Source: Obrimoposthia wandeli
Taxonomy: Eukaryota
Length of the DNA: 64,000 bases
Direction of reading: 5' to 3'
Assembly: GCA_977020255.1 (NCBI GenBank)
Contig: CDROCS010001161.1
Span: 1 to 64,000, forward strand
The notes below the pieces were generated by a model. That model ran no database searches and was not told the origin of the DNA. It saw only the letters and a program-made list of their open reading frames with translations. Both the position numbers and the translations under genes were made by a program. Of the stretch, positions 7,065 to 61,299 are shown one piece after another (positions within the stretch are counted from its first letter, which is position 1; each line of letters opens with the position of its first letter).

Positions 7065-7116
7065 ATCTCCGACGGGAAAAAAGCCCGTTTCGCCCTGCCG
7101 GGCTCATCAGGGAGAT
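7065..7116 (-). ncRNA. Type I hammerhead ribozyme, canonical core, GUC cleavage site
   Basis: Minus strand reads AUCUCC-CUGAUGA-GCCC(GGCA)GGGC-GAA-ACGGG(CUUUUUU)CCCGU-C-GGAGAU. All core nucleotides and all three stems are perfect. Confidence 0.95.
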
Positions 7117-26847: not shown

Positions 26848-26899
26848 GTTCCCGAACGGATTATCACCGGTTTCGCCCTGCCGGGCTCATCAGGGGAAC
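26848..26899 (-). ncRNA. Type I hammerhead ribozyme (UUC site, one C-U mismatch in stem III)
   Basis: GUUCCC-CUGAUGA-GCCC(GGCA)GGGC-GAA-ACCGG(UGAUAAU)CCGUU-C-GGGAAC. Confidence 0.9.
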
Positions 26900-58800: not shown

Positions 58801-59552
58801 CAGTTATTTAAAGGATAAAAAAACAGCTACAATGTCTCAAAATCTTTGCCGAAAGTTATCGAATCAAGACGATCAAGGCTAACAAAAGGATGAACATATA
58901 TTTGTATTCGTTCTGCAGTGGTCTCCGAGGTCAACGTTACTGAAACAGAAGTCGACACAACACTGTGCACCTAAACCCATCACAATGAGATATAAAGCCT
59001 GCAAATGTGCATATGTGCTATATTAATCAAATATTGACTGTACGTAAACGAGCCGATCTCAATGAAAGTGTGTCAGAGTCTGCAAATATGTACACAGCTC
59101 TTAGAGAATATCGAAACTCCCGGAAATCGTTGTGTGTGAGTGTCCTGGAGAATCGTATGTGAACTTTATCGTTGACATCGATAAATCCTTACTCCATCGT
59201 AAATAAAACGCATTGAGTAACGTGTATATATGTTCAAGTTTGTGTTTAACAATAATAACAAGACATAGGCTGGAAAAGTTTTCTTTTCAAATGATTAATT
59301 TTATTATTGAATAACTTTCCCCTCTTTACTCATATCATGTATCGGGGTATGGCTTCATAGAAAACAGCATAATTATCCCTGATAAAACAAACATAAAACA
59401 AAGAATTCCATCCAAAAAATGATCTATTAGAGAGTACTTGACTGTGGGTAAGCACCAAATTATTCTTAAAGTTCTTGTACCAAAGTAGAGAGTGCTCCAA
59501 CCTCGACTTCAAAAAAAATTTAACCTCATAAAGTAATTTACCAAATTTGATA

Positions 59553-59942
59553 CACTCGTTGAAAATTAATAGCAGTCATGCTGCATATTAATCATAATCA
59601 ACCAAAATTGAGTGTAGAATGAGTGGTTGATTAAATAAAATCATCAACTCTACACCCAATTTTGGGATTGTAAGCAGTAAACTGACATCCATATAGTGTG
59701 TATTTACTATAGAAAAAATGCACACTATCACAAAATGTTAATATCAATTATTATTAATATCACAATATAAAATAATTTAAACCGATATAAGGCTGTTCCC
59801 GCCTTACCGATGAGGCTCGGAGAGGCGAAATCGGTATAATGATGCTATTTTATGCAATTGATATTAACATTTTGTGATAGTGTGCATTATTTTTCTATAG
59901 TAAATGCACACTATATGGACTGCTATTAATTTTCAACGAGTG
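59553..59942. mobile_element. Tc1/mariner-type MITE with ~87-bp TIRs (left TIR interrupted by a 112-bp foldback insert)
   Basis: TA-CACTCGTTGAAAATTAATAGCAGTC...GACTGCTATTAATTTTCAACGAGTG-TA; the inner arm 59690-59749 pairs with the inner part of the right TIR (59856-59942). Confidence 0.88.
59781..59835 (+). ncRNA. Type III hammerhead ribozyme (AUA site; U4C and one stem II mismatch)
   Basis: ACCGAU-A-UAAGGC(UGUUCCC)GCCUUA-CCGAUGA-GGCUC(GGA)GAGGC-GAA-AUCGGU; stems I and III are perfect 6-bp helices. Confidence 0.85.
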
Positions 59943-61299
59943 TACTAGTAATGCATACCAGCATATGCAGCTCATGTTTACTAATCTTTCCGATTCAAAG
60001 TTAAAAATTGAAATATTTATTGAGATTTAAATTAGAAAGATGTTAAATAGTGTTGAGTTTGAAAGCAAAATGATAATTTTTAAAAAGAATGCATGGGCAG
60101 CATTTAGGTGATTGTTGTGTTTGTTGTTTTTGGGCATCAGTAAAATGGGAAATTATAGAGAATTGATTGTCGGAAGTCCATAAAGTTCCATTACTTCCAT
60201 TATCATTTGAAGTTTTTAAAGCTAAACGATTTCATAAGATATAAGAATTATGGAAAATAGATTTGCAGGAAAATGGGATGGTGTTTTGAAGGAAGATTAT
60301 GTCTGTTCTCTTGTTCGTTCTGACAATACAACTTATAAATTGAAACCCCCGATCAAGTGTGCAATTTATATTTTGTTTATGTGTTATATGCAAAATACAA
60401 TAGTTAATCCGAATATTTTGGAAATGAAATTTGTTAGAGTTACTGAAGTTATAATGGAGCACAAAGTATGTCAGAGATTGTCCAAAAATCTAGTAAATTA
60501 CGAAATTGTTATTTTTTTGACAAAAAATTATTGGAATACCATTTTTATAAACAGGTTCCTCGAATTGAAATGTAAATATTATAAAATATTGATAAGCACA
60601 CATAAATGAAATTTTGTTACAATGTAATTATCACCACTATTTATCATTAAACTTCAATAAATTACATTTAAGAACAAAATGAAACGTTCAGTAGATATGC
60701 TCAGTATACGGCTTTTGCTGTTTATAGTTAGTAGAAACGTTTTATTGAGAACATTTTGTTTCAATTTCTGTTAAATTTAAAATCATTCTGGTCAAAATAT
60801 TTTTTTAAATCCCTAAACCTGTTTTGATTATCTATAACAGTGGGGAATATATTTTAAAATGTCCTATTTTATAAAACAAAGCTTCAAAAACATTTAATCG
60901 TTGCTAATCCTCTAGGAACAACCAGAAACAACCAATTTAATTTCTCCCCATTCTGTTAATCGAGGGAATAACAGAATCGAGACAAACAATGACGCTGAAT
61001 CTCTTGTCTATTTTACTGTTCCCCATTTTCATTTTCAGTTCACATTGTTCGGCATTCATTTCTATACACCTACACATTCAGCTTAACTCAATGCTTGTGA
61101 AAAATCAATATTTTGTAACTGACTTAATTCATCATATTTCTATATATGTATATATTGCATTTGTTTATTTGTCATATAAACCAAAATTAATAAGTAGCAA
61201 GCATTAGAATTGGGTACTTGAATAAGTTACCGCTATTTTCAATATAAACATTAATATTAATAATAAAATAAACAATATTTTCACCCGCTAACTATGGCA

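Follow-up and report, generated by a model that had tools for sequence, protein, structure and literature searches.

To our knowledge, self-cleaving ribozymes in eukaryotic mobile DNA have so far been tied to retroelements and circular RNAs, and we know of none in the repeats of Tc1/mariner/IS630 transposons. Full-text literature searches brought up no DNA transposon reported to have a hammerhead in its inverted repeats. The sequence described here is a candidate for this arrangement. It lies in a 64,000-nucleotide stretch of the genome of Obrimoposthia wandeli (positions 1 to 64,000 of the forward strand of contig CDROCS010001161.1, GenBank assembly GCA_977020255.1; this whole stretch is referred to as the window), in which positions 59553-59942 are occupied by the remnant of a DNA transposon with a type III hammerhead motif. 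Comparison with related loci in the same assembly leads us to the reading that the remnant stems from an extinct Tc1/IS630-type transposon and that, in the active ancestor, a hammerhead ending each terminal inverted repeat (TIR) cut transcripts entering from either side. We give this reading a probability of about 0.55.

The putative ribozyme itself has close relatives in form. Like the hammerheads of plant long terminal repeat (LTR) retrozymes and the type III hammerheads of viroids and satellite RNAs (Cervera et al. 2016; Dufour et al. 2009, PMC2632901), it combines a 6-bp helix I with a heptaloop starting with UG and a short helix II, and it also shares with plant retrozyme and viroid type III hammerheads a purine-rich loop 2 ending in A and an open helix III. 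In plant retrozymes and in the family described here alike, the ribozyme is part of a mobile element's terminal repeats. It is the carrier, and not the ribozyme, that sets the family apart: the element belongs to class II, encodes a DDE transposase, has inverted instead of direct repeats, duplicates TA and not 4 bp upon insertion, and inhabits an animal. A further difference from plant retrozymes concerns geometry. As the two ribozymes of an element face each other, each transcript contains a single sense copy, so that no unit-length circle can be released from it. Among animals, mobile elements with hammerheads in terminal repeats include Penelope-like elements, Terminons and metazoan retrozymes (Cervera & de la Pena 2014, 2020; in PMC7936874, PMC6431247). 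These are retroelements whose direct or tandem repeats mostly contain hammerheads of type I or of minimal form, whereas the present family combines a type III hammerhead with a DDE transposon. The hepatitis delta virus (HDV)-like ribozymes at the 5' end of the non-LTR retrotransposons R2, RTE and L1Tc (Eickbush 2010; Ruminski 2011; Sanchez-Luque 2011; in PMC7936874) are comparable in that they are located just upstream of the coding region and can free element RNA from read-through transcripts. They belong to another ribozyme class and are carried by retroelements, and their cleavage is demonstrated, whereas we infer it here. With Tc1/mariner/IS630 transposons that have long TIRs, the family shares TA duplication, a DDE_3 transposase, a length of ~1.8 kb and many derivatives with internal deletions. 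The closest conceptual parallel is found in the IStrons of Clostridioides, in which a group I intron is fused to an IS200/605-type DNA transposon, so that here, too, transcripts running through a DNA transposon are acted upon by a ribozyme which it carries. IStrons differ in being bacterial, in using another family of transposase and in that their intron restores the host transcript by self-splicing.

The family comprises ~20 related loci in the 1.35-Gb assembly. Most of them match window positions 59551-59777 at 91-95% identity; next come ~50 bp absent from the window copy and, after these, the hammerhead. The full-length form measures ~1.85 kb and has TIRs of ~349 bp flanked by a TA duplication. 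Two copies are near-complete, C371 (L038, inverted repeats at 626-951 and 2106-2430(54)) and C1824 (L039, 276-bp inverted repeats). In these elements, inverted repeats of 276-326 bp enclose an interior of ~1.1 kb that is ~91% conserved between the copies. Every family end in the genome abuts TA, with unrelated sequence outside. The interior harbors a transposase remnant broken by stops and a frameshift. In C371 and C1824 the remnant matches Pfam DDE_3 with E 9e-5, a value under the curated cut-off because the sequence is a fragment, and in tblastn it matches intact DDE_3 transposases with E 1e-37 over about residues 45-295. Because of this match, we classify the family, from its sequence features, as a low-copy and dead cut-and-paste transposon of the Tc1/IS630 type (DDE_3). 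An intact autonomous copy was not found in the genome; the search yielded only the two decayed copies. Repeat ends differ pairwise by 4.7% on average and the two ends of a single element by 4.3-4.8%, a divergence pattern that points to a single old burst of a family which is now extinct. A preliminary description of the window, made from its letters and without database searches, had already proposed a DNA transposon with TA target duplication as the carrier. It was right on both counts, as the family unites TA duplication, inverted repeats and a DDE_3 transposase and is not a retroelement.

The position of the hammerhead became apparent when 17 repeat ends were aligned from their outer towards their inner side. 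The two end types share ~349 bp and diverge right after the hammerhead and five further shared bases, ATAAT. Five 5'-type ends carry the hammerhead (C371_R, C1824_R, C549, C4161 and C908b), as do five or six ends of the 3' type (the window copy, C371_L, C2915, C908a and, twice, C509). Because both end types diverge immediately after this point, the aligned hammerhead motif is the innermost 55 nt of both TIRs and faces the interior of the element. In the 5' repeat it is oriented like the transposase, whose gene follows shortly after the motif stops at about nt 344, and an AT-rich box directly precedes the motif. An ATG is present a few tens of nt 3' of it, and the first detectable transposase homology begins near nt 542, ~200 nt past the hammerhead end. 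The preliminary description had considered that the ribozyme might be a one-off insertion absent from other copies; instead, it proved to be a feature of the family, and of both end types.

The family consensus is canonical. It reads CUGAUGA, GGCUC/GAGCC in helix II and GAAA, the last including G12-A13-A14, and has an AUA triplet. None of the 11 core bases is missing, G10.1 pairs with C11.1 and A15.1 with U16.1, and the three helices, of 6, 5 and 6 bp, are free of mismatches. Helices I and II are capped, helix III is open and H17 is not G. One natural copy (C371:284789-284850) shows 0 mismatches to the consensus over C371:284801-44, and six further copies deviate by at most 2. The preliminary description had proposed to see whether the consensus of collected copies has CUGAUGA together with GCCUC/GAGGC; the former is indeed present, while helix II reads GGCUC/GAGCC instead. 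It had also drawn attention to a UG-starting 7-nt loop I and a purine-rich loop II, and these are UGUUCCC and GGA. Both correspond to motifs of natural hammerheads (PMC2632901), loop 1 to UNmYN (as UN4YN) and loop 2 to RNnA with an atypically short n of 1, and type III hammerheads usually have a helix I of 6 bp closed by a 7-nt loop (PMC7936874). In addition, the GGA of loop 2 is Watson-Crick complementary to UCC in loop 1. Judged by this consensus, the ancestor of the family possessed a flawless hammerhead at the time of amplification.

In principle, an AT-rich repeat may happen to meet the hammerhead consensus without ever having cleaved. We estimated how often this is to be expected by means of an analytic formula, which was validated on 400 Mb of simulated, composition-matched sequence; the simulation contained 4 loose and 0 strict matches, and the formula predicted 3.1 loose ones. 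For a motif of equal helix quality, the genome-wide chance expectation amounts to 0.19 when any loop length is allowed, and this figure of roughly 0.2, together with an Rfam score under the threshold and a predicted minimum-energy fold that is not the hammerhead (both detailed below), is what such a look-alike has in its favor. The expectation drops, however, to 0.002 with canonical loop lengths and to 7e-5 with the loop motifs, and the complete core, both key pairs and three perfect helices of the consensus also argue against it. We consider a chance resemblance improbable.

Whichever side a transcript came in from, the ribozyme of the active ancestor would have cut it ~296 nt past the element's end. 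In the sense orientation, the transposase message would thereby lose both the adjoining host RNA and the outer repeat, the cut lying shortly before the coding region; this would amount to 5'-end processing of the kind carried out by the HDV-like ribozymes of R2, RTE and L1Tc. Because the cut would come more than 1 kb before the second repeat is made, no intramolecular double-stranded RNA of ~300 bp would arise to feed silencing. Work by Sijen and Plasterk from 2003 reportedly showed that such a repeat duplex triggers RNA silencing of Tc1 in nematodes. It is tempting to go one step further and to propose that the transposon equipped itself with a ribozyme in both repeats, thereby freeing its message and evading silencing by double-stranded RNA. 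We regard this extension as tentative and rather doubtful. If it holds, the family would be the first class II element of eukaryotes with a ribozyme, and an animal would possess a canonical type III hammerhead of the plant/viroid style. The retroelement-bound picture would be widened by a DNA transposon whose inverted repeats include a hammerhead, which would also provide testable models of how promoter-poor transposons gain a usable message from read-through transcripts and of whether transposons can avoid hairpin RNA from their own repeats. The finding also shows that the canonical type III form is not confined to plants and their subviral RNAs. If the motif is inactive, the finding shrinks to a curiosity of one extinct family.

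The presence of the hammerhead in both repeats can also be explained by a fundamentally different history, in which one end acquired a hammerhead from another ribozyme-bearing sequence of the genome, the other end received a copy of it when the long inverted repeats formed, and the transposon never made use of it. The genome is rich in hammerhead-bearing repeats, among them the type I motifs of the window, and contains an unrelated single-copy type III hammerhead at C1876:31655-31710. The small size and extinction of the family and the strong competition between the ribozyme fold and a predicted alternative fold fit a mere passenger as well. The 1.35-Gb assembly, however, contains no similar donor: a 3-mismatch pattern search and a covariance model both detected copies in the family only, and the motif with its 60-bp upstream flank occurs in 17 places, all within the family. 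Two further points against a passenger are the placement of the motif, which coincides with the inner boundary of both repeats and immediately precedes the gene, and the flawless state of the ancestral hammerhead when the family amplified. In our view, such a history is unlikely, though it deserves to be kept in mind. The preliminary description had named a captured retrozyme fragment as a more specific source. This proposal finds no support, as ribozyme and flank are confined to the family, which has no donor outside it; the repeats are inverted and not direct, and the target-site duplication is TA rather than 4 bp. For relatives in other species, an exhaustive profile search of public protein collections with a 119-aa piece of the transposase gave best matches at 52-53% identity, and a word-index protein search gave no match. 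Metagenome and viral contigs scanned for the core and helix II contained only four unrelated GC-rich matches.

Several observations weigh against the interpretation that the repeats of the active ancestor contained working ribozymes. The best copy in the family reaches 21.7 bits with Rfam Hammerhead_3 (RF00008) versus a gathering cut-off of 48.5, with helix III mis-aligned; note that in the genome-wide scan with this model only 68 of 144,513 candidates were scored and controls were silent. RNAfold, which leaves aside tertiary contacts and co-transcriptional folding, predicts a strand-swapped rod of -24.2 kcal/mol that is 6.4 kcal/mol more stable than the hammerhead fold (-17.8 kcal/mol), and assigns helices I and II a pairing probability of ~0, both alone and in the context of the repeat. 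By contrast, the type III hammerhead at C1876 is its own minimum-energy structure. According to these predictions, the competing fold may keep activity low. Across copies, the hammerhead has accumulated more substitutions than the rest of the repeat (4.9% versus 2.8%, p=0.005), probably as a consequence of its CpG-rich composition. As the hammerhead is not conserved above its flanks, the present copies are unconstrained, as expected of dead elements. Neither covariation nor compensatory helix changes were found among the family copies, and the family sequence was found in no RNA run. A cut at the 5' side removes the cap, which would normally lower translation. Finally, the relatives of the transposase lack the feature: the nearest public transposases (at most 53% identity) have short (~47-bp) repeats and no hammerhead, and the next-best transposases in the genome (52-58% identity) likewise have short repeats and no hammerhead.

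The window copy was the starting point of the preliminary description, which had reported a 55-nt type III hammerhead. Such a layout can be read directly in 59400-60100, at 59781-59835 on the plus strand, and comprises the following parts:

59781-86/59830-35, plus strand: helix III, from reading of the sequence
after A59787, plus strand: predicted cut of the window hammerhead
59788-93/59801-06, plus strand: helix I, 6 bp, with the 7-nt loop UGUUCCC
59807-13, plus strand: core, reading CCGAUGA, with C59808 in place of U4
59814-18/59822-26, plus strand: helix II, with a G59815:G59825 mismatch and the loop GGA
59827-30, plus strand: GAAA of the window hammerhead

The core thus deviates from C3-U4-G5-A6-N7-G8-A9 through U4C at 59808, and the family consensus has C at 59825, where the window copy has the mismatched G. 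Both defects had been noted before, together with the remark that the copy may be weak or inactive. Because of U4C and the broken helix II, the window hammerhead is most likely inert. With the covariance model R1 the motif obtained 92.4 bits. A search with Infernal and Hammerhead_3 had been suggested as a check; it brought no confirmation, as Rfam gave no hammerhead match for the window copy, either at the gathering threshold over the whole window or at E<=10. The window also contains type I hammerheads on the minus strand (~7065-7116 and ~26850-26893), which have GCCC/GGGC in helix II and reside in a dispersed repeat. The type III motif has no sequence in common with these hammerheads near 7110 and 26893, in full agreement with the earlier view that they are separate.

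The arrangement of the surrounding element, compared with its parent, is as follows:

59551..59552, no strand: left TA of the target-site duplication; a single TA in empty-site paralogues
59553..59777, plus strand: left arm, corresponding to parent TIR positions 3-228, complete; 91-95% identical over 1-227 to ~10 other loci
59578..59687, plus strand: 110 bp of parent repeat missing from the right arm, with a local hairpin at 59602-18/59649-65; both ends of other copies have the segment
59778..59840, plus strand: inner end of the parent repeat (~279-349), with ~50 bp (229-278) deleted just before it; from the alignment of 17 repeat ends and blast coordinates
59841..59855, plus strand: ~10 nt of parent 3'-side interior, followed by the deletion junction; matches the 'GATGCTATTT' type found after the hammerhead in 3'-end copies
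59856..59942, minus strand: right arm, a truncated second repeat covering parent ~200 to 138 and then 27 to 3; from alignment to the parent
59943..59944, no strand: right TA of the target-site duplication; a single TA in empty-site paralogues

The insertion target was an older dispersed repeat (window 59414-59545 and 59945-60110) with at least 27 genome copies at 70-83% identity. Four paralogues of this flanking repeat align across the empty site with a single TA; therefore, 59553-59942 is an insertion with TA duplication. The element has no coding part, and its right arm has lost parent positions 28-137 as well as everything beyond ~200, including its own hammerhead. The inverted repeats are consequently not the ~87-bp TIRs of the preliminary description: a perfect outer repeat of 27 bp (59551-77/59918-44) and an inner repeat of 62-64 bp (59688-59749/59856-59919) are separated by the 110 bp at 59578-59687, which in the window element are present in the left arm only.

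The preliminary description had offered yet another explanation, a family of miniature inverted-repeat transposable elements (MITEs) whose transcript opens its own hairpin by a cut in the central spacer. What speaks for the idea is that the window copy indeed folds into a single long hairpin (-181 kcal/mol, z=-20.5), close to whose tip the motif lies. The deletion junctions of the window element, however, recur in no other locus among the ~20 of the family, so that no second copy with this structure exists, and other short derivatives (C456, C153/C215, C3441) each have different junctions and mostly lack the ribozyme. Many homogeneous short copies with the same internal structure, as a MITE family would present them, were not found; the parent is the ~1.85-kb transposon. 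A cut in the loop would moreover not open the hairpin, as it leaves the duplex intact, now in two pieces, and this particular copy has the U4C exchange and the helix II mismatch. A self-opening MITE is therefore very improbable. By comparison with the parent, the 394-bp hairpin of the window is a one-off, internally deleted remnant of a larger transposon that retained one hammerhead by accident of deletion, and differing, private junctions are, on the evidence of these alignments, the pattern expected of abortive gap repair rather than of a MITE family.

Inside the terminal repeat, no direct repeats are present, and inner transposase sites in the form of direct repeats were therefore rejected. 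Two hairpins of the repeat in the window (59592-59674 and 59864-59926) gave weak, sub-threshold matches to models of plant and animal microRNA precursors (MIR1523, 31.7 bits; mir-2001, 21.6 bits), which are most likely generic hairpin matches.

One copy, C509, is exceptional in being the sole member of the family with two same-sense hammerheads. It contains a tandem duplication of a 348-bp unit (L043 1052-1390 and 1400-1738, 99.7% identical), which is probably recent and local. The two hammerheads lie 348 nt apart, a geometry that would release unit-length RNA as in animal retrozymes. A different kind of array is located at G000:C3571:16202-29923, where at least 12 Tc1-like transposase matches follow each other on one strand with a spacing of ~1 kb; it looks like a tandemly repeated transposase fragment.

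The unrelated type III hammerhead mentioned above (G000:C1876:31655-31710; L084 2056-2111, minus strand) is canonical and single-copy and lies outside repeats. Its triplet is GUC; UGGGUU forms the loop of its 6-bp helix I and GGAA that of its 4-bp helix II, and its RF00008 score of 38.8 bits is also below the threshold. Hammerhead-like motifs are furthermore present in the flanks of two family copies, near 1135 on the minus strand of L009 (G000:C2624) and at 653-691 on the minus strand of L019 (G000:C908), the latter with 27 bits in RF00008. These flank motifs illustrate how common hammerhead-like motifs are in this genome.
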